IMG/VR virus record: IMGVR_UViG_3300036715_000626
Coordinates: 62,001 to 126,000 of that record
DNA length: 64,000 nucleotides
Direction: 5' to 3' (one strand)
Made by a program: the position numbers and the translations under genes. The notes beneath the pieces were generated by a model, which worked only from the letters and a program-made list of their open reading frames with translations, made no database searches and was not told where the DNA came from. Shown one piece after another: positions 1,630-63,035 of this stretch. How positions within the stretch are numbered: the first letter of the stretch is position 1; every line of letters starts with the position of its first letter.

Positions 1630-3484
1630 TCTCTTATTCACATAATACGTTACTATTACGTCGCGGCTTTACCCGCTGCTCGATCTTTCGACCGATGACT
1701 GTGTTTTACACAGAAAACCCTCTTAAGGGTGAGTAGACTATATCTTATTTTTGATTGTTTTGTGTTCAAGTCTTCTGATCTTAATATGGGGGTGATCAGA
1801 AAGACTCACTAATTCTTCTAAACTGTGTCTAAGTAAGTACGAGTTTATGTTTGATCTTGGATTACCAGCATCTTTAAATACTCCTAAATACATAGCTAAT
1901 CTGAAGTTACCAAATACATAAAATACTTGTTTACCTTCTTCTCTATTACTATCAATGACTTCATATGTAGCAGCACTAATATCTACATTGTATCTACTGT
2001 TTACTACCTCTTCTTCAGTATAGTTTTTCCAAGTAAAGTCATTAACAGATGATTTTATACCATAGCCTTTAATTATCCAAGACTCATTGCATGTAGACGA
2101 TTTAGCTAATGCCGTACTAATCCTGTGATTATTTACTTGGTTGGATACCGGCTCTTTTGTTAACAAGAAATCAGATACTTCATCAATAGTGTTTAACACT
2201 ATTTCTTCTTTAAGTGTATAATCATACAGATAGTAAAAATGATCTCTCTTGATATATGGTTTAGACAACCATGTTTCTCTTGCTAATATAACTTCTTCTT
2301 TATTAACACTGTTGGGTATTTTAGTAACATCCATAGTTGGAGTAACTAGATAACCCATGGTGTATATATAACCATCTCGATTAAGAAACTTAGATAAATA
2401 TCCAATGGACATACCTGTATTATAAGATACCAACATCATACTGTTATACATAGTCCATGTCTCATCAAGTACATCATATACCCACATCTCCACAGCAGCT
2501 TTACCACTGGTATTAACAGGTCCTAAAACAAACTTATCCTTTAGAGATATAATATACCTATTTAGAATAGGATACTTATCAGAATGTTTTATATGCGATA
2601 CGATAGCTAATGGATTGACATTCAAATATTTAGACATTCTACTAATAGACATAAAAGTTTTTTCAGTATTATCCAGTATATCTTTAACAGTGACTATTGC
2701 ACTGTTCGTCCATAACCCGCTATCAACTGCGTGATTGGTATTCTCTTTACGAGTATTCCAAGCCAAATTCCAAATCCTATTATTTTGTTTATTTCCATCT
2801 TCATGATTAACAGTTGGTTTATTTTCTGGATTAGGTATCCATGCTAAAGCAACCATTCTGTGTACTTTTCTAGGGTTCCTAGCTAAGGTATCAGATGTTA
2901 ATGTGGCGTTAACATAACCATCCGGATCTAGGCTTGTTTTTAAAAGCCCTCCAGTAATAACCCGCAGTCTACCTATATTACTAGCTTCGTAACCTTTATA
3001 CCCGAGCACTGGTTTCCAGAGTTCATTTTTTAATTCCTCCTCTGTATAAGGAATGTGTTTACTTCGTATTACCACTATATTCCTTTTTTAACAAACAACA
3101 CCCCCGTATTATTTGTTCCTTTTATAAAACAATCAAAATCCTTCCGTTTCGATTTAAGGGATTTGATACCCACCCACTTGGGCCCTACTCTACTCCGTTG
3201 AGTACTTATTAGTACCGAGAGCGTCTATAGCTCTCTCATACACTGTCGTGCGTCGTTTCGATAGTCGTTGAGCACATCTCTTCATCTTACATGCTAAGAG
3301 ACTTCGCTGCGTCGATTCCCAAATCCTGATGAGTTTTTACCATTCCTTTATTTCCATTATTACGGTTAAGGTTGTTATACTCTGTTTCCAGGTATAAGTG
3401 GTATCATCAAGCTCTAACGGGGTCCCCGCAATTAGGAAGGTTATTTTACTACGCATCACTGCGTAGGGAGACAAATTATTCTTT
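1630..3484 (-). mobile_element. group I intron (phage IA2-like) in nvRNAP beta', with homing endonuclease in P8
   Basis: P1: exon GGAGAU pairs IGS GUCUCC with the conserved U.G; P element AAUUGCGGGGA; Q AAUCGACGCAGC; R CUCAACGACUAUC; S AAGAUAUAGUCU; several P9 hairpins before exon 2. Confidence 0.9.
1738..3075 (-). CDS. intron-encoded NUMOD4-HNH homing endonuclease
   Basis: WKPVLGYKGYEASNIGRLR (NUMOD4); VHRMVALAW...VNHEDGNKQNNRIWNLAWNT (HNH_3); its TAG stop lies inside the intron S element. Confidence 0.9.
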   Translation of the reverse strand: MVIRSKHIPYTEEELKNELWKPVLGYKGYEASNIGRLRVITGGLLKTSLDPDGYVNATLTSDTLARNPRKVHRMVALAWIPNPENKPTVNHEDGNKQNNRIWNLAWNTRKENTNHAVDSGLWTNSAIVTVKDILDNTEKTFMSISRMSKYLNVNPLAIVSHIKHSDKYPILNRYIISLKDKFVLGPVNTSGKAAVEMWVYDVLDETWTMYNSMMLVSYNTGMSIGYLSKFLNRDGYIYTMGYLVTPTMDVTKIPNSVNKEEVILARETWLSKPYIKRDHFYYLYDYTLKEEIVLNTIDEVSDFLLTKEPVSNQVNNHRISTALAKSSTCNESWIIKGYGIKSSVNDFTWKNYTEEEVVNSRYNVDISAATYEVIDSNREEGKQVFYVFGNFRLAMYLGVFKDAGNPRSNINSYLLRHSLEELVSLSDHPHIKIRRLEHKTIKNKI

Positions 3485-4732
3485 ATCTCCATCAAAGTCA
3501 GCATTGGACGACTTAGCGATGAGACCCGAGATACCAATAGTGTTATCATAGGTATCTGTTTTAAACTTACCTATATACACTGCTTGTGATGAACCTTGTA
3601 GTAGACTTGGATTCCGTTGTGCTAAGACCATAATCTTTCTGTCAGGCGCTTCGTTAATGAGTTCCTGTAACAGTTCATCGATAAGCGGTATGTACCGTTT
3701 AACCGCGTCAAACAGCATGTTACTTGCTTTCTTATACGTCATTTTACGTTGATTAACCAACTTGTTTATAAGATGAGGTCTAAACGCAGTTACTCCGATA
3801 GCCCAAGGTACCCATATCTCGTCATGACGATGTTTACCAGGGATACTTGTAATAACTGATCTGAAAGTAAAATGTGATCTTGCTCCGTATACATGCTTAC
3901 GAAATAATCCTACTTTCTTAGTAATATACCGTTCATAGTAGTTATGATACAATGAAGCTAATTTAGAAATAACTACCGATGTATGAGATGCATTTTTACG
4001 ATGGCTTTGTTTCTCACTTGTAGAGTTAATCTTAATCCACGTCATAACAACATCAATAACATCCGATACCGCTAAGTTAATAAATTTACCTTTAGTGGTA
4101 TTTTCCATAACGAAGAGTTTCTTATTGATAATCGGTAAATAGTTACTGAAGATGAGATCCTTTTGATGGGTATACATGTCCAATAACAAATACAAGTTAT
4201 CTTGTTTATCGATATCTTTAAACTTAGCATGGTTCATCAGATACTGAATGATTTCAGGGAGTTTGATAATAAAGTTCTTATAAGAACGTTCTACCATAAT
4301 CTCTTTGATACCATGAGTAAAGTTTTGGAGTTCCACCGGTGGGTTATACATTGGATCAGTCATCCATCGTACATAATCGATTTTCTTATCGAGAATGTTA
4401 CGTAGCATCAACCAGTAAGCTGGGTTGATAAATTCTAACCCATCTTCTAATTTTTCTAACCAAAGCATAGGATCTACTTTTTCATGCACTTCTTTACAGA
4501 CAGTACCGCATGAACTACATACTTTTTCAAGTAGATAGCGACCTTTAAGGTTACCACAATCACAGGAAGGAATAGTAGATAGTATATCACTGTCATAAAC
4601 AGTAATCAGTTGGTTGTTAACTTCTTCGATGTCATCTACTGAGAAATGATCTAGGTTGTTAACGATTACTTTAAACCCTGTGGAGTGTGCGAAGAATTCG
4701 TCGAAATTGACTAAACGTTGTGTGATAGCCAT
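3485..4732 (-). CDS. non-virion RNAP beta' subunit, exon 1 (phiKZ gp55-like)
   Basis: Zn ribbon CDC...CSSC; RNPSL; catalytic NADFDGD immediately before the intron. Confidence 0.9.
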
Positions 4733-5774: not shown

Positions 5775-6476
5775 TTACATAATATCGCTTAATGTCGATA
5801 ACGTAATTAGATTAACTAAAGAACCTAATTCACTATCGCTATAGCTTTCTAACTTACTCCAGAGTTCTTCCAACTCAACTTTGTAATGCTCTACATATTC
5901 AGTATCATTGGTTATATAGCCAGTTCTACTGTATTTAGCCTTAAGATGATCGATAATGTACTTGATTTTTTCACCATAGGCGTCTAAAGAATCTTTAATA
6001 TCGGTAGGAAATTTATTAGACTTAACCATGCGTGAAATGATTGCCTGCAAATCCGGTCTACCTTTATCAGCGATTCTCAGTATTTTACTGTAAATAGAAC
6101 TTGATGATGTAACACTACTAGCTCGGTGCTCACGAACAGCATTCTCTATAATACAGAGTTCATCACTATTAAACATCTTTAGATATTTATCAGAGATATT
6201 TTTAACATAATCACCAGCTAAATCATGATGTTCCTTACGATTTTCATAAACTTTGATATCGTGAAGATACGCACACATGAAAATAATATGGTAATCGATT
6301 GAAGGTGATTTTAGTTTACACGCTAGCATAGCCATATTTTTATAAACATCATCTGCGTGATCGATCTGATGACCTAGATCGTTATGTATATAAAAGGTAT
6401 GTCTATAGTACTCCCTGGCTTCTTTTTGCCATTGATTTCTAAAATACGCCTCTATGGGTATATTTCTATTGCTCAT
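5775..6476 (-). CDS. HD-domain phosphohydrolase
   Basis: H..DH, LHDI, HR, IAD motifs. Confidence 0.85.
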   Translation of the reverse strand: MSNRNIPIEAYFRNQWQKEAREYYRHTFYIHNDLGHQIDHADDVYKNMAMLACKLKSPSIDYHIIFMCAYLHDIKVYENRKEHHDLAGDYVKNISDKYLKMFNSDELCIIENAVREHRASSVTSSSSIYSKILRIADKGRPDLQAIISRMVKSNKFPTDIKDSLDAYGEKIKYIIDHLKAKYSRTGYITNDTEYVEHYKVELEELWSKLESYSDSELGSLVNLITLSTLSDIM

Positions 6477-6505
6477 GATTTTCCTTTAAGTCTTTAAGAT
6501 AAGAT

Positions 6506-6549
6506 ATGTCTATACCAGGATACCGATTACGGTATCCTGGTATAGACAT
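6506..6549. terminator. long palindromic terminator closing the non-coding locus
   Basis: 20-bp inverted repeat ATGTCTATACCAGGATACCG / CGGTATCCTGGTATAGACAT. Confidence 0.7.
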
Positions 6550-6563
6550 CAGTAAAAAATATT

Positions 6564-6940
6564 CAAATCCCGGAGTGCGCCCGAGATTTGGTTTAAAAAG
6601 GGGCAGCATATTTTTTATTATACTCTCCGTAAGACTTAACTATCGGAGAGTCCAGAGTTTCTTTTATCGCTAAGTATATCTCAACTACAGCGGTGAATAC
6701 ATCTGAATTGTTTTCTAATTGAAGCGTCCAACAATTAGAAACACTTAAACAGTTTAAATATCCGTGAGTTATCGAACGCGTAAGGCGTAAACCCGATACC
6801 GATACTACATCGCGATGAGGTAGCCTGACCAACCGCGAAATACCGGCAACGAATACTTAAATAAACTGTTTAAATGGGGTCTATCACGCGCCGTTTAACG
6901 CCGGCCAATAAGCCGGCTGATCGGCACGTATAGAACACCA
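6564..6940 (-). ncRNA. candidate large structured ncRNA
   Basis: GC-enriched; nested helices with many G.U pairs on the minus strand; no credible RBS-led ORF. Confidence 0.55.
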
Positions 6941-7049: not shown

Positions 7050-7123
7050 TGGTTAGACTAGACAGATTCAAACTGTCGACCTCTGTAGGGTGATACAGTG
7101 CTCTATCGCTGAGCTATAGCCTT
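7050..7123 (-). tRNA. tRNA-like RNA with CCA end and a non-canonical 6-nt anticodon loop
   Basis: AAGGCTA/TAGTCTA acceptor, GCTC/GAGC D stem, CTGTA-TCACCC-TACAG, GACAG-TTTGAAT-CTGTC, ACCA end. Confidence 0.75.
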
Positions 7124-7223: not shown

Positions 7224-7314
7224 TGGTGGGTGCGGTAGGATTCGAACCTACGACGTTTCTTTAAATGTGGTCGATTATGAGTCGACAGGGCTCGACCGCT
7301 GCCCGTACACACCC
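7224..7314 (-). tRNA. tRNA with CAT anticodon (elongator Met or Ile2), long variable region
   Basis: GGGTGTG/CGCACCC acceptor, GTCGA-CTCATAA-TCGAC, GTAGG-TTCGAAT-CCTAC, encoded ACCA. Confidence 0.85.
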
Positions 7315-7708: not shown

Positions 7709-7896
7709 GGGTAAAATAAACTCGAACTTATACGCAACAATAACCTACGACGAAACACATTAGTTATTGTGCATATAAGAGTGTCAACCGTGTACGTATA
7801 ACACCTATCAGTATTAAAGTTAATATTCATAGGTAGTATATTATGGTCATAATAATCTATTCTGATAAAAAATTATTGCATCACCATTACTCATAT

Positions 7897-10009: not shown

Positions 10010-11104
10010 ATGTTTAGTTACTTTCTAAATAATAACATAGACACTACTGAATATGTTGTTAAAGAATACTCACGGTTTGAATATTTCCAACGTCGGTACC
10101 GTCACGAACTTGATAAAGTAGTAAACTATTATAAATTAAGAGAACGTACTGTTAACAATAGACACATACTGAGCAGATTAGTCAATATGATAGCTCCTAA
10201 TATAAATCTCGATGATGTTACTTATTTAAAGATAGTAACCGCTACTGCTAAATACGTTAGTAAACAATTTGGTATTACCAGTACTATCAACTATGGAATA
10301 GCTCATGAGAGTATATTTTATGGGCAAAATTCAACAGAGTTACTTATATACACAGAGACAAGTATAGACTTAGCATATGTTGCTAAAAACTATGATGCTA
10401 TAGCTAGTGTAAAACCTATCTATCATGAAGATACCGATTTAGACTATTATGTACCTATGGGTACTAAGGATTTACGTAAACCATCTTTATCTGTTTTTGA
10501 AATAGATATCGTTATGATGCTGATGCAATATAAATACTGGGCTCTTGACAGAATCTATTCAGACCTCGGAACTAACCCCAATGTATTTGTAGCGACTGTC
10601 GTTATTCCTAATATGGTTTACCAAACATTTGATTTAGCCTTATGGAACAGATTTGTAGCTATTCACCGAACGGATTATATTCCTAAGTTTGTTATTAAAC
10701 ACCCATTCCCACTTATAAACTTCGATGATAAAGCGGATAATATCTACCGCGACATCTTAAAATATGTTAGTAATAATATAATACCTCTCAGAGGTCTTTT
10801 AGAGACTATTCCAGCTGCTTATTCTGTTAACATGGATAATGTACTTGCAATAGATATAAATTACTATACTGCTCAATCTGAATGGGTTATATGGTTATCC
10901 CGTATCTTTGTAATAAACGATCTTATTGATATCCTTGGTGAAAAAGGTCGTATTAGAAATGTTCTTTTAATAAATGAGCTTCCTGTTAAAATGCGTTTAT
11001 TAGATAACCGAAGTACTAGACTTGAAGGTATGTTACCTGAAGTTATTTACAATAGATATATCGATACTATCAATTCTATTAAAGAAAAAGTAGGAAAAAG
11101 ATAA
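10010..11104 (+). CDS. conserved phiKZ-like protein next to chimallin
   Basis: 364 aa, AAAGGA RBS, divergent from chmA. Confidence 0.75.
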   Translation: MFSYFLNNNIDTTEYVVKEYSRFEYFQRRYRHELDKVVNYYKLRERTVNNRHILSRLVNMIAPNINLDDVTYLKIVTATAKYVSKQFGITSTINYGIAHESIFYGQNSTELLIYTETSIDLAYVAKNYDAIASVKPIYHEDTDLDYYVPMGTKDLRKPSLSVFEIDIVMMLMQYKYWALDRIYSDLGTNPNVFVATVVIPNMVYQTFDLALWNRFVAIHRTDYIPKFVIKHPFPLINFDDKADNIYRDILKYVSNNIIPLRGLLETIPAAYSVNMDNVLAIDINYYTAQSEWVIWLSRIFVINDLIDILGEKGRIRNVLLINELPVKMRLLDNRSTRLEGMLPEVIYNRYIDTINSIKEKVGKR

Positions 11105-11109
11105 GAAAA

Positions 11110-11180
11110 AAATAGGCTGGATTCGAACCAGCGACCGATAGCCCTTGCGGGCTATAACTCTACCACTGAGCTACTATATA
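11110..11180 (-). ncRNA. anticodon-less tRNA-like small RNA
   Basis: TAGCTCAGTGGTAGAG D arm; ATAGCCC-GCAA-GGGCTAT in place of the anticodon arm; GCTGG-TTCGAAT-CCAGC T arm; weak acceptor, no CCA, ends in a T-run. Confidence 0.7.
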
Positions 11181-11183
11181 ATA

Positions 11184-11192
11184 ATAATATAG
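11184..11192 (-). promoter_or_regulatory. putative early promoter driving the tRNA-like RNA
   Basis: CTATATTAT with upstream TTATAACC and A/T tract like the other copies. Confidence 0.65.
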
Positions 11193-11221: not shown

Positions 11222-11252
11222 AAGATAGCACTACCATTGGTAGTGCTATCTT
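11222..11252. terminator. palindromic terminator
   Basis: 15-bp arms, 1-nt centre, directly after the stop of 11253..11555. Confidence 0.7.
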
Positions 11253-11555
11253 TTAATCTTCATATCCGGAACCGCCACATACATCGCATGTTTTTTCGCA
11301 ACGTCGGTTATCGTCATCGTAAATATCATCATCTACAACACCGGTGCCGCCACATCCATCACATTTATTTTTCTCTTCGTAAGCCATAGTACCCTCCTTT
11401 AAAGAATCTGCTTCTTGACAAATTTGTTTATACGAATTCCGTACTAAAGTCATATACCCGCTACCACCACAATTACTGCATGTTTCTGTAACATTATTGC
11501 TCTTAACATATCCTGTGTGGTTACACGTCGGACACCCAACACTAACACTACCCAT
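11253..11555 (-). CDS. DnaJ-type cysteine-rich zinc-finger protein
   Basis: Four CxxCxGxG-like repeats. Confidence 0.75.
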   Translation of the reverse strand: MGSVSVGCPTCNHTGYVKSNNVTETCSNCGGSGYMTLVRNSYKQICQEADSLKEGTMAYEEKNKCDGCGGTGVVDDDIYDDDNRRCEKTCDVCGGSGYED

Positions 11556-11581
11556 ATAAACTCCTTTGTCATTACAACTTA

Positions 11582-11590
11582 ATAATATAT
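11582..11590 (-). promoter_or_regulatory. putative early promoter
   Basis: ATATATTAT upstream of 11555. Confidence 0.55.
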
Positions 11591-11592
11591 AA

Positions 11593-11778
11593 TTATTCCC
11601 ATGCGGAAATAATCTTTTTATTAGGTACTAAAGTTAATATCCACCCGGTACCTATACACGTAGGACAGATACGTGTAACGATACCATGCTCGGCCTCAAA
11701 CTCTTCTGGGAGTTGTCCTGTGCCAAAACATTCTTTACAATATTCTTTACTCTCTGTAAACCCTTCAATCGTGCACAT
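11593..11778 (-). CDS. small DnaJ-type zinc-finger protein
   Basis: CKECFGTG and CPTCIGTG. Confidence 0.7.
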   Translation of the reverse strand: MCTIEGFTESKEYCKECFGTGQLPEEFEAEHGIVTRICPTCIGTGWILTLVPNKKIISAWE

Positions 11779-44654: not shown

Positions 44655-45042
44655 TCGTATCCTTAAATTTAAAGATTTTAAACACGACCTCCAACTTAAT
44701 ATCAGTATTTACTTTGTAACTATCAAAAACAATGTCAGCTACATCAGGAGGGGTCTTATTTAATAATATATATTCTAAGGTATTTATAAACCCAAAAACA
44801 ATATTAATATAATCACGTTCTCTATAAAAGTGAACGATTTCATCGTAGTGTCGATTAACGTCATCGTTATAAACATGTTTAAGAACTTCATTGGTAAATA
44901 TCCCTATAGGTTCAGTTTCATCTGTGTGATGTAAACGGTATAACTCTATGAGACGTAATTCAAGAAGAACTCCTGGTATCAATTTACCAGCTAACGGTTT
45001 AAGACGTGTTAAATCAACAACAAGAGTTTCTTCTATTATCAT
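44644..45042 (-). CDS. hypothetical protein
   Basis: 132 aa, coupled stop/start. Confidence 0.65.
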   Translation of the reverse strand: MIIEETLVVDLTRLKPLAGKLIPGVLLELRLIELYRLHHTDETEPIGIFTNEVLKHVYNDDVNRHYDEIVHFYRERDYINIVFGFINTLEYILLNKTPPDVADIVFDSYKVNTDIKLEVVFKIFKFKDTNEE

Positions 45043-48574: not shown

Positions 48575-48623
48575 CTCGCACTAAAAGATTACATTAAAAT
48601 ATCAAACTCTAATGTCTATATTA

Positions 48624-48632
48624 ATAATATAT
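48624..48632 (-). promoter_or_regulatory. putative early promoter
   Basis: ATATATTAT motif. Confidence 0.6.
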
Positions 48633-58646: not shown

Positions 58647-59131
58647 TATTTCTGGAGATATAGATCGACTATATATTGCGCAATATAATCTAAATTAATA
58701 ATATATGGTTTTAATTTATGCGAATTAGTAAACGCAAAGTGATTAAGATTGTTTTTAGCCCCTTTTTCATAACTAGTAACAAACACAGAAGCCACATCCA
58801 GAAAAGTATTAAATACCTCTCGTTCGTTAGGCAACATTTTACCCGAACTACTACACCATTGGTATAGTTGTAACTTAATGACCCTTTCTGTAGAGATAGG
58901 TTTATATGGATAGTAACCGGTTTCTAAATCAAAGCAGTTTATTCCTTTAAACAATTCAATATAGTCTACAAGATCTTTTTCTTGGGAATATATAGTACCG
59001 CTAGAATAAGGTTTCTCGTAAAGTGATATATTGCATAACTTAAGAAATTTAATACGATCTAATAAAGTACGTATTTTTAATATTTTAAATCGGTAGAGTA
59101 ATAACAATATTTTGTTAATATATAATCGCAT
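58643..59131 (-). CDS. hypothetical protein
   Basis: 162 aa, CAGGAG RBS. Confidence 0.65.
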   Translation of the reverse strand: MRLYINKILLLLYRFKILKIRTLLDRIKFLKLCNISLYEKPYSSGTIYSQEKDLVDYIELFKGINCFDLETGYYPYKPISTERVIKLQLYQWCSSSGKMLPNEREVFNTFLDVASVFVTSYEKGAKNNLNHFAFTNSHKLKPYIINLDYIAQYIVDLYLQKY

Positions 59132-61568: not shown

Positions 61569-63035
61569 ATGGAAAATATCGCAGAAACACCAATAATAGA
61601 AGAAATACCTTATAACGTAGCTGTTTGTTATGCTGATGGAAGTGCTATGCCGAATCCAGGATTCTACGGAACGGGTGTACATGGTTATATATACAATACT
61701 ATTAATCTAGATAAGAAAAATGGTGACAAACCAAGTAAGTACGTTATATCAGATATTGGTTATTTAGAAGCAGATCAATTGCTTAAATACAAATATAGAA
61801 CTGTTATACCAGATTATTATATTAACGGGTATGTTAGTTACGACGGCATCGGTACTAATAATATAGGAGAACTTAATGGGTTTATAGAAGTGATCACTAA
61901 CTTAATGCAACAAACTGAATTAGCTATTAAACACTACATTATTAAAACCGATAGTATGTATCTTATCAATGTTGAGAAATCTATATTACGAGATACAGCT
62001 AGAAGTTGGGCAAGTGAATTTGGTAAACCTAATTTACAATACTGGCATGTACTTGAAAAACTTATTCTAGAGATGAAAGAAAAAGATATAACTTATGAAA
62101 TAGTTAAAGTCTTAGGCCATTCAACATCGTTAGGAAATATTCTAGCAGACCGTTTAGCATTATTAGGACGTACTGAATCAACGCGTTTAAACGCAGATAT
62201 CTCTATAATGGTTACTCCTGCTAAGAACTACTGGACTGCTAAAGTTGATAGACATCCGTTCCTAAGTTTTAAACAATTGTTCTTTACTAACACATTACGA
62301 GAATCTAACACTGAAAACTTGTATGCTGTGATGAACTACAAACGTGATGTAGAACCTGGTAAGAAATCACACGAAGCTTGTTTTGGACTAGTACTCTTAC
62401 AAGAACAACAAACCTACATTGAAAGTGTTATTGACGTATATCAAAAGCATCTTAAGACATTATCGATAATTTATACAGCAAATCTAAATGATATTTATTC
62501 ACAATATGCTATCTTGTATAATAGTTTGTTTGGAGATAAAATATATAATTATAACCGTAAGAGAGGAATTCTGAGTGTATTGGAAAGACTTGAATTAGTA
62601 TATGACGTAAGACCTACTGGATTAGCTAACCAAGCTATCGACAAGATAATGGGGCTCTACACAATTATTCGTGAATATCGATCAACTGATAAGGTTCATG
62701 CTAATCGTCTCTTTATAGACGTCACAGATAGCTTCTACGGTGTAGATGAGAAAGGTAAACCAGTTACTGTTATTAAAAACGGTATTAACTCTGTTAACCT
62801 TGAAGTAAACGCTTTCGATACAGATTTGTTTATTCCGATTGAATTAGGAAAAGATACTTTAGAACGTAATGTATTTAAACGTATTGAAAAAGAAAATACT
62901 AAAGTTACTTTAGTGGTCACTAAGATATCTCCGACATTTATCGATTACTATCTTGTAGTTGAAATGGTTAACACTGGAGATATTTCAGTATGGTGTAATT
63001 TCTATAATAATAACATACTTTTACCAAAAAAATAA
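61569..63035 (+). CDS. RNase HI with C-terminal extension (phiKZ type)
   Basis: YADGS..PNPG; TNN.GEL; TDS.Y; VLGHS...GN.LADRLA. Confidence 0.9.
   Translation: MENIAETPIIEEIPYNVAVCYADGSAMPNPGFYGTGVHGYIYNTINLDKKNGDKPSKYVISDIGYLEADQLLKYKYRTVIPDYYINGYVSYDGIGTNNIGELNGFIEVITNLMQQTELAIKHYIIKTDSMYLINVEKSILRDTARSWASEFGKPNLQYWHVLEKLILEMKEKDITYEIVKVLGHSTSLGNILADRLALLGRTESTRLNADISIMVTPAKNYWTAKVDRHPFLSFKQLFFTNTLRESNTENLYAVMNYKRDVEPGKKSHEACFGLVLLQEQQTYIESVIDVYQKHLKTLSIIYTANLNDIYSQYAILYNSLFGDKIYNYNRKRGILSVLERLELVYDVRPTGLANQAIDKIMGLYTIIREYRSTDKVHANRLFIDVTDSFYGVDEKGKPVTVIKNGINSVNLEVNAFDTDLFIPIELGKDTLERNVFKRIEKENTKVTLVVTKISPTFIDYYLVVEMVNTGDISVWCNFYNNNILLPKK

Follow-up and report, generated by a model that had tools for sequence, protein, structure and literature searches.

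A conserved tRNA-shaped element with a predicted sealed anticodon arm in a phiKZ-like jumbo phage

Introduction

What does a phage gain from a gene that keeps the body of a tRNA while both of the ends through which a tRNA works appear to be disabled? The usual accounts of tRNA genes in phages are that they supply codons or replace tRNAs that host nucleases have cut. Neither explanation accounts for a locus in which the whole body is selected and both functional ends are abolished, and such a locus would point to a role by shape alone. The question is raised by a 73-nt tRNA-shaped RNA gene on the minus strand at 11108-11180 of a 64-kb window (the whole stretch of DNA analysed here), which is part of the 205-kb viral contig IMGVR_UViG_3300036715_000626. 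The gene comprises cloverleaf positions 1-72 plus a discriminator U, and is supported by ARAGORN, by Rfam and by its counterparts in two other assemblies (L070 and L003). An original prediction, made from the DNA letters without stating the strand, had described the locus as a stand-alone, promoter-driven tRNA mimic with a GNRA tetraloop in place of the anticodon. Here we ask how far this description holds, whether the element is under selection, and which function best fits its structure, its surroundings and its relatives.

Results

The source phage has no close cultured relative

The 46 proteins scanned in the window include chimallin, a PhuZ-like tubulin, split multisubunit RNA polymerase subunits, a divergent family B DNA polymerase, and phiKZ-type tail sheath and tube proteins. 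The presence of chimallin, PhuZ-like tubulin, split RNA polymerase and phiKZ-type tail genes therefore identifies the source as a nucleus-forming, phiKZ-like jumbo phage. The window has a G+C content of ~35%, and an HNH/NUMOD4 homing-endonuclease-like gene (1738-3075, minus strand) lies immediately 3′ of the gene for an RNA polymerase beta′-like subunit (3476-4732). A megablast search of cultured phages with the window gave zero matches, and the proteins beside the element share <30% identity with their best matches; judged by these sequence comparisons, no cultured phage is close to the source phage. Near and distant DNA searches of cultured phages likewise returned no relative, only generic tRNA matches, the best of which to the element body were Bacillota tRNA-Asn.

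The element combines a tRNA core with a sealed arm and a weak acceptor

The Rfam tRNA model RF00005 matches the element at 46.5 bits (E = 9e-7 for the 64-kb window; gathering score, 29 bits), and ARAGORN labels it 'tRNA-???' with a two-base anticodon 'ca'. The D arm, variable loop and T arm are those of the original prediction, and all are on the minus strand. The D arm, GCUC/AGUGGUA/GAGU (11157-11171), has a 4-bp stem and a 7-nt loop containing A14, G18 and G19, the variable loop is CGGUC (5 nt), and the 5-bp T arm, GCUGG/UUCGAAU/CCAGC (11116-11132), also fits a terminator-like pattern when taken together with the U-run that follows. The tertiary core is complete, with U8, A9, A14, G18 G19, R15:Y48, G53-C61 and the UUCGAAU T loop all in place, and the element thus offers each of the features expected of a tRNA tertiary core (U8-A14, R15:Y48, G18/G19 with the T loop, and G53-C61).

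The departure from a tRNA is found in the equivalent of the anticodon arm (11138-11155), which has 18 nt instead of 17. An independent assembly from a different sample (L070) carries an element identical to that of the window, so the additional base did not arise through faulty assembly. The arm forms the predicted 7-bp stem capped by the GNRA tetraloop GCAA (11145-11148), and its central octamer, CCGCAAGG, is self-complementary and is unchanged in the sister phage L003. Folding predictions favour the closed cloverleaf by 7.8 kcal/mol over one that leaves the 8-nt loop open, and give the two added C-G pairs a pairing probability of at least 0.998. In an ordinary anticodon arm, a 5-bp stem carries a 7-nt loop that stays open and contains U33 as well as a purine at position 37; the element does not conform to this, and has C33 where U33 is universal.

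The acceptor is weak in the window. It has five Watson-Crick pairs out of seven, close to the number first proposed, with U1.U72 and U3.U70 mismatched, and the predicted probability of its pairs is only ~0.25. The 3′ acceptor strand CUAU followed by seven U (11106-11112) occupies 11106-11115 and has no CCA, as the original prediction had also noted, and this U-run is probably the 3′ end or terminator of a small RNA. CCA is not encoded at the element in either the window or L003, while it is encoded in the tRNA-Met and tRNA-Val-like genes of the phage.

The element lies between a promoter-like motif and a convergent gene

A copy of the motif TATATTATTA (11182-11191, minus strand) stops one base short of cloverleaf position 1, and the AT-rich stretch upstream of it, to ~11209, is conserved in L003 too. 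The window contains eight exact copies of this motif, all on the minus strand (808-817, 10771-10780, 11182-11191, 11580-11589, 44761-44770, 48622-48631, 58696-58705 and 61856-61865), against 2.4 expected on both strands. Several copies are intergenic and 5′ of minus-strand genes, and the same motif is found 5′ of small zinc-finger genes in the relatives L004 and L007. The motif resembles the mapped early promoter of the AR9 virion RNA polymerase, AAATATATATTAT-(6N)-G+1 (PMC5312081). Early promoters of phiKZ-like phages are highly conserved AT-rich sequences of ~10 nt whose centre lies near -10, and transcription begins 6 nt further on (PMC7598289, PMC5312081), and the tRNAs of phiKZ possess their own transcription start sites (PMC8244752). 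By analogy with these phages, TATATTATTA is probably an early promoter of this phage clade. The proposed placement of the element just downstream of a promoter copy thus stands as to the motif itself and needs correction as to the spacing, given that the gap is a single base and the start is predicted inside the acceptor. Transcription would begin at about cloverleaf positions 4-7, within the acceptor 5′ strand, and because the AR9/phiKZ spacing puts the start there, the acceptor helix of the primary transcript may be just 2-4 bp. Several copies of the motif have a G 5 nt further on (e.g. ...ATATAG), and two copies lie antisense within plus-strand genes. A sigma-70-type promoter overlapping the motif (9 of 12 matches) was rejected, being at chance level in AT-rich DNA and not conserved in L003.

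Upstream of the element, on the same strand, are genes for an SbcC-like protein, a 61-aa zinc-finger protein and a 100-aa DnaJ-type CxxCxGxG zinc-finger protein (11253-11555; Pfam PF00684). The last of these evolves fast, with 45% identity to its L003 orthologue compared with 82-89% for the flanking core genes. The two small Cys-rich proteins next to the element (11253-11555 and 11593-11778, both minus strand) are DnaJ/anti-TRAP-like, and their counterparts in relatives have 43 to 53 aa. The terminator predicted at 11222 is a bidirectional hairpin at 11222-11252, with a 14-bp stem, T-runs on both sides and compensatory changes in L003; transcription of the minus-strand genes upstream ends here, as probably does that of the convergent gene on the plus strand. 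Its loop reads CAATGG in the window and CATTGG in L070, a one-base difference between otherwise identical assemblies, the two versions being mutually reverse complementary. On the other side of the element, the U-run adjoins the stop codon of the convergent gene (10010-11104, plus strand), which encodes a 364-aa conserved chimallivirus protein matching the family phrog_3938.

This arrangement raises the possibility of a role in cis or in antisense, in which the element would be an insulator or terminator, an RNase P/Z processing signal, or an antisense RNA to the 3′ UTR of the 364-aa gene that couples early and late expression. The element sits exactly between the convergent gene and the bidirectional hairpin, its T arm and U-run match a terminator pattern, and, from the layout of the DNA, the transcript of the 364-aa gene must cross the element antisense to reach the hairpin. 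However, the hairpin alone suffices in relatives, the conserved 15:48 pair, D loop and T loop would be needless for a terminator or roadblock, and the members of the class found in tRNA arrays (see below) lie away from convergent junctions. We therefore consider a cis or antisense role unlikely, though it is the best of the alternatives weighed here.

The element is a lineage-specific insertion under purifying selection

A search with the 364-aa neighbour protein found nine relatives, the closest of which, L003, comes from another sample and has 87% protein identity. It carries the element at the same place (L003:2534-2606; 84% identical). In L004-L011 (63-64% protein identity) and in L012-L015 (41-44%), the element is absent from the site and the hairpin directly follows the convergent gene. 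Its presence in the window phage and L003 and its absence from the site in L004-L015 thus indicate a lineage-specific insertion. Exact and degenerate pattern scans for this element recovered nothing but the source contig from IMG/VR, and nothing but an unrelated GC-rich element from JGI metagenomes. Retrieval by way of proteins yielded a single sister phage and a single identical copy; the more distant relatives that it brought up lack the element, and a search with the neighbouring zinc-finger protein gave nothing additional.

The element is thus represented by two independent sequences, window/L070 and L003, and all covariation comes from one comparison. Between them, 12 of 73 bases differ (16%), against 41% of third codon positions and 48.5% of fourfold-degenerate sites in the 364-aa gene, so the element changes more slowly than silent sites (binomial p about 6e-6). 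Half of the 12 differences make up three double compensatory changes: pair 31:39 is C-G in the window and G-C in L003, pair 49:65 is G-C in the window and A-U in L003, and the tertiary Levitt pair 15:48 is G:C in the window and A:U in L003. The probability of at least three such events among 12 random substitutions is 7.5e-4. As for the other stem changes, one converts a pair to G.U and one breaks a pair. The two acceptor positions that are mismatched in the window are paired in L003, where the acceptor is a perfect 7 bp, and the four acceptor pairs left by the predicted start are invariant between the two phages. The octamer, the T loop and the remainder of the D loop are unchanged as well, while five of the ten stem positions flanking the octamer are altered. 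The G.U pairs, at 10:25 in the window and in L003 alike and at 30:40 in L003, are compatible with a minus-strand RNA only. The zinc-finger neighbour is only 45% identical and the flanks are 82-89% identical, and the conservation is therefore specific to the RNA. Taken together, this sequence comparison indicates that the element is under purifying selection. The original prediction had allowed for the case that relatives carry an ordinary tRNA here, with the stem extension not conserved; L003 keeps the sealed loop and has no ordinary tRNA in this place.

These observations bear on the view that the element is a relic, a tRNA gene with a Bacillota tRNA-Asn-like body that was inactivated by a 1-nt insertion and now drifts. 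The 8-nt loop, the missing U33 and CCA and the two acceptor U.U mismatches would all suit such a history, as would the absence of the element from the next relatives and the damaged loop of the phage's own tRNA-Val orthologue (see below). The GCAA loop and U73 would also suit a former tRNA-Cys origin. A tRNA pseudogene is expected to change at the neutral rate and to lose pairing at random, and the element does neither. Its 16% divergence from L003 compares with 41-49% at silent sites, three changes are compensated doubly, and the octamer is invariant though half of the flanking stem positions changed. In addition, a perfectly paired, GNRA-capped extension is unlike random decay and recurs in unrelated phages. 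On the one pairwise comparison between the window and L003, a drifting pseudogene is ruled out, and we regard the relic explanation as improbable overall.

All three tRNA-type genes of the phage are unusual

The original prediction had counted a second, independent anticodon-dead tRNA shape at 7050. This gene (7053-7123, minus strand, with CCA at 7050-7052) proves instead to be a tRNA-Val orthologue, which scores 43.7 bits with Rfam and is missed by ARAGORN. Its counterpart in L004 (3072-3147) is an ordinary tRNA-Val with anticodon UAC. The anticodon loop of the window gene, UCACCC, has 6 nt compared with 7 in the L004 gene. In the T stem, every change from the L004 sequence is compensated, and ACCA is retained, with an A.A mismatch at 1:72. 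The third tRNA-type gene is a tRNA-Met(CAU) at 7224-7314 (minus strand) in which comparison with orthologues reveals an insertion of ~14 nt in the variable region. The insertion can form a short imperfect hairpin, while in the L004 and L007 orthologues the variable loop has its normal 5 nt. None of the three tRNA-type genes of the phage is therefore ordinary, which may reflect either a shared selective pressure on anticodon arms or relaxed constraint.

The structure does not favour decoding or charging

Could the element still be a working tRNA with an expanded 8-nt loop? It would then serve in +1 frameshift or quadruplet decoding, or read with a Cys (GCA) or Leu (CAA) anticodon, once its 3′ end had been trimmed and had received CCA. 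In Bacillota, RNase Z normally processes the products of tRNA genes that lack CCA and are followed by U, and the identity of tRNA-Cys involves U73 and GCA; the element would suit both, and in L003 its acceptor is a full 7 bp. The arm is also exactly one base over normal, as in suppressor tRNAs of the SufB2 type, SufB2 being characterised in one account as a frameshift suppressor with an expanded anticodon loop (10.1101/2020.12.31.424971). The resemblance ends with the length of the arm, since SufB2-type suppressors have an open decoding loop with U33, and in the element the additional base completes a helix instead. The loop is self-complementary and predicted to be closed with a probability of at least 0.998, C33 replaces U33, and an open U-turn loop is not available. 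Moreover, the acceptor is poor in the window, the predicted start lies inside the acceptor strand, the real tRNAs of the phage encode CCA, and a non-systematic look through the ORF list of the window found no frame-split gene. A decoding role is accordingly quite improbable.

The least probable role is that of an amino-acid carrier for a non-ribosomal reaction, with CCA added, charging by an anticodon-blind synthetase and a sealed loop that bars the ribosome: sealing the anticodon would effectively keep a charged tRNA out of translation, but the element has no CCA, a weak acceptor and no transferase gene nearby, and G3.U70, a long variable arm and G-1, the usual identity sets for anticodon-independent charging, are absent. 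Non-proteinogenic tRNAs and pseudo-tRNAs do exist in Bacillota. The pseudo-tRNA of Bacillus cereus retains an open anticodon loop and a CCA end, and is chromosomal, whereas the element is phage-borne. As quoted in a later paper, this 'tRNA-Other' is non-canonical, has a non-translational role and comes from a low-GC Gram-positive host (PMC3399842 cited in PMC8007984).

Sealed tRNA-likes recur in other viral contigs

We scanned for similar arms with an IUPAC pattern that joins the end of the D stem, an 18-nt arm with a central GNRA, and the T loop. In IMG/VR, the scan found further viral tRNA-likes in which pairing extends through the whole arm up to a tetraloop (GNRA or UAAA, 6-8 bp). They include a GUGA-capped arm of 8 bp (L032:768-842), two tandem copies capped by GAAA and UAAA (L043:7684-7758 and 7773-7844), a GCGA-capped arm (L020:571-643), further sealed arms at L038:1025-1097 and L036:7354-7427, a GAAA-sealed tRNA-like (L016:635-708) located ~40 nt downstream of a permuted tmRNA, and a GCAA-sealed tRNA-like (L033:5160-5240) with relatives in L034, L037, L039 and L040. 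Within this last family of five viral contigs (41-186 kb), stem changes go from G.U to A-U and from G.U to G-C. When the same pattern was run against bacterial and archaeal genomes (596 Gb), few matches lay in a tRNA context (L044, L060 and L059); the sealed tRNA-like of L059 (847-921) lies in a dense tRNA array of a phage-like kind.

Both extension pairs are complementary in seven of nine families, compared with 25% expected from a pattern that fixes only G/C at the two extension positions (p = 0.0013). Most sealed members lie within phage tRNA arrays and score 41-48 bits with the tRNA model. In L032 and L059, the sealed member is without CCA while the neighbouring tRNAs have an encoded CCA. 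Comparison with the adjacent tRNAs rejected a recent duplication both for L032, despite a GUGA loop that could recall its tRNA-His neighbour, and for the sealed elements of L043. No convincing neighbour protein is common to the sealed families, the sole link between contigs being a weak 38% match, with no family assignment, between small proteins of L032 and L033. Judged from these sequences the recurrence of sealed tRNA-likes is real, and it may be convergent and heterogeneous rather than the trace of one family.

Several of these contigs have further features of their own. The L033-family tRNA-like has an unusually long D loop and an encoded GCCA end, and the L033 contig carries two tRNAs with the amber-reading CUA anticodon. 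The L043 array holds 33 tRNA genes, a tmRNA (113 bits) and an ochre-reading tRNA with a UUA anticodon (coordinates 6413-6804 and 11224-11300). The permuted tmRNA of the viral contig L016 (382-598) matches RF04321 at 63 bits.

Discussion

Our analysis leads us to favour, with moderate confidence, the view that the locus encodes a selected, non-decoding, tRNA-derived small RNA that acts through its body. Because the element is kept by selection, its tRNA-shaped RNA probably works by binding and not by reading codons. According to this explanation, selection would maintain the L-shaped tRNA body, that is, the elbow formed by the D and T loops together with the tertiary core. Both working ends would be disabled, the anticodon by its enclosure in a 7-bp GNRA-capped helix and the other end by a CCA-less U-run and a short, weak acceptor. 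The locus would be an accessory insertion with signals of its own, the promoter motif on the 5′ side and the T arm with the U-run on the 3′ side, yielding a transcript of ~70 nt that is probably early and probably made by the virion RNA polymerase. Such an RNA would decode no codon, accept no amino acid and offer no loop for cleavage. Given no decoding, no charging and no loop for an anticodon nuclease, selection would therefore have to act on the body, meaning the elbow, the core and the short acceptor/T helix.

We suggest that the small RNA may occupy a factor that recognises the tRNA body, as its ligand or as a competitor for it. Candidate targets would include the processing enzymes RNase P and RNase Z, enzymes that add CCA or modify the T loop, and immune proteins docking on the body or the 3′ end of a tRNA. 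The original prediction had proposed a decoy for tRNA-sensing or tRNA-cleaving immunity, or a ligand for elbow-binding proteins, and a decoy for the classic anticodon nucleases is the less likely form of this idea; it is doubtful because the loop that those enzymes recognise is gone. Among the 46 proteins scanned in the 64-kb window, we found no partner gene for tRNA repair, a CCA-adding enzyme, Ro/TROVE or an RNA ligase. Circumstantially, an accessory function related to conflict would suit a unit that stands alone, was inserted in one lineage and has a fast-evolving neighbour.

Comparison with known systems helps to define what is particular to the element. It shares with canonical tRNA (RF00005) the standard D arm, T arm, 5-nt variable loop and tertiary core, and differs in that its 8-nt 'loop' consists of two extra pairs and GCAA, and in having no U33, no encoded CCA and a weak acceptor. 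Stable RNAs C and D of phage T4 (species 1 and 2) are likewise phage small RNAs in or near a tRNA cluster with tRNA-like parts. They were rejected as the same structure, as rnaC is 139 nt long, its tRNA-like parts are limited to a T arm and an acceptor-like stem, and it does not match the tRNA model. The tRNA-like domain of a tmRNA, an acceptor/T-arm module joined to a tag reading frame and pseudoknots, was rejected also: the element is a self-contained 73-nt cloverleaf, and neither ARAGORN nor Rfam called a tmRNA in the window.

Another parallel is the tRNA-like domain of the bacterial Y RNA YrlA, which acts with Ro/Rsr, occurs in some phages as well and is a non-decoding mimic of the body and elbow of a tRNA. 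In YrlA, both RNA ends build a long stem that binds Ro, whereas the element is flanked by a promoter-like motif and a U-run. Jumbo phages sometimes encode a TROVE protein together with a tRNA-like partner (PMC7824862). A Y RNA/Ro arrangement was nonetheless rejected here, there being no end-formed Ro-binding stem and no TROVE match among the 46 window proteins.

Eukaryotic cells offer further tRNA-shaped RNAs. The mascRNA of MALAT1 and the vtRNAs of gammaherpesvirus 68 are not aminoacylated, have a degenerate anticodon end, and are RNase P/Z products of longer Pol II or Pol III transcripts. These RNAs have no homology to the element and belong to a different biology. Non-decoding tRNA look-alikes are hence already known elsewhere, and the general kind is not new. 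The claim of a previously undescribed kind probably holds in a narrower sense, as similar sealed tRNA-likes recur in unrelated viral contigs and a literature search found no description of tetraloop-sealed tRNA-likes in phages.

It is tempting to extend the proposal from this locus to the class. Sealed-anticodon tRNA mimics could be recurrent, undescribed phage small RNAs, often CCA-less, that occupy or inhibit a host factor recognising the tRNA body, such as an immune effector or a processing enzyme, with the jumbo-phage copy as a stand-alone, early-expressed member. We offer this only tentatively, and consider it appreciably less probable than a body-borne function for the single element. 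If the recurrence in tRNA arrays holds, the 'tRNA-???' and 'undetermined' calls that annotation pipelines discard may conceal a functional RNA class, which would bring a player at the RNA level into the phage-host conflicts that revolve around tRNA. A GC-rich metagenomic tRNA-like (L028:7123-7215, the same as in L029) has a 7-bp stem capped by GGAA instead of an anticodon loop, along with a D-loop insertion of ~20 nt, and receives no ARAGORN call.
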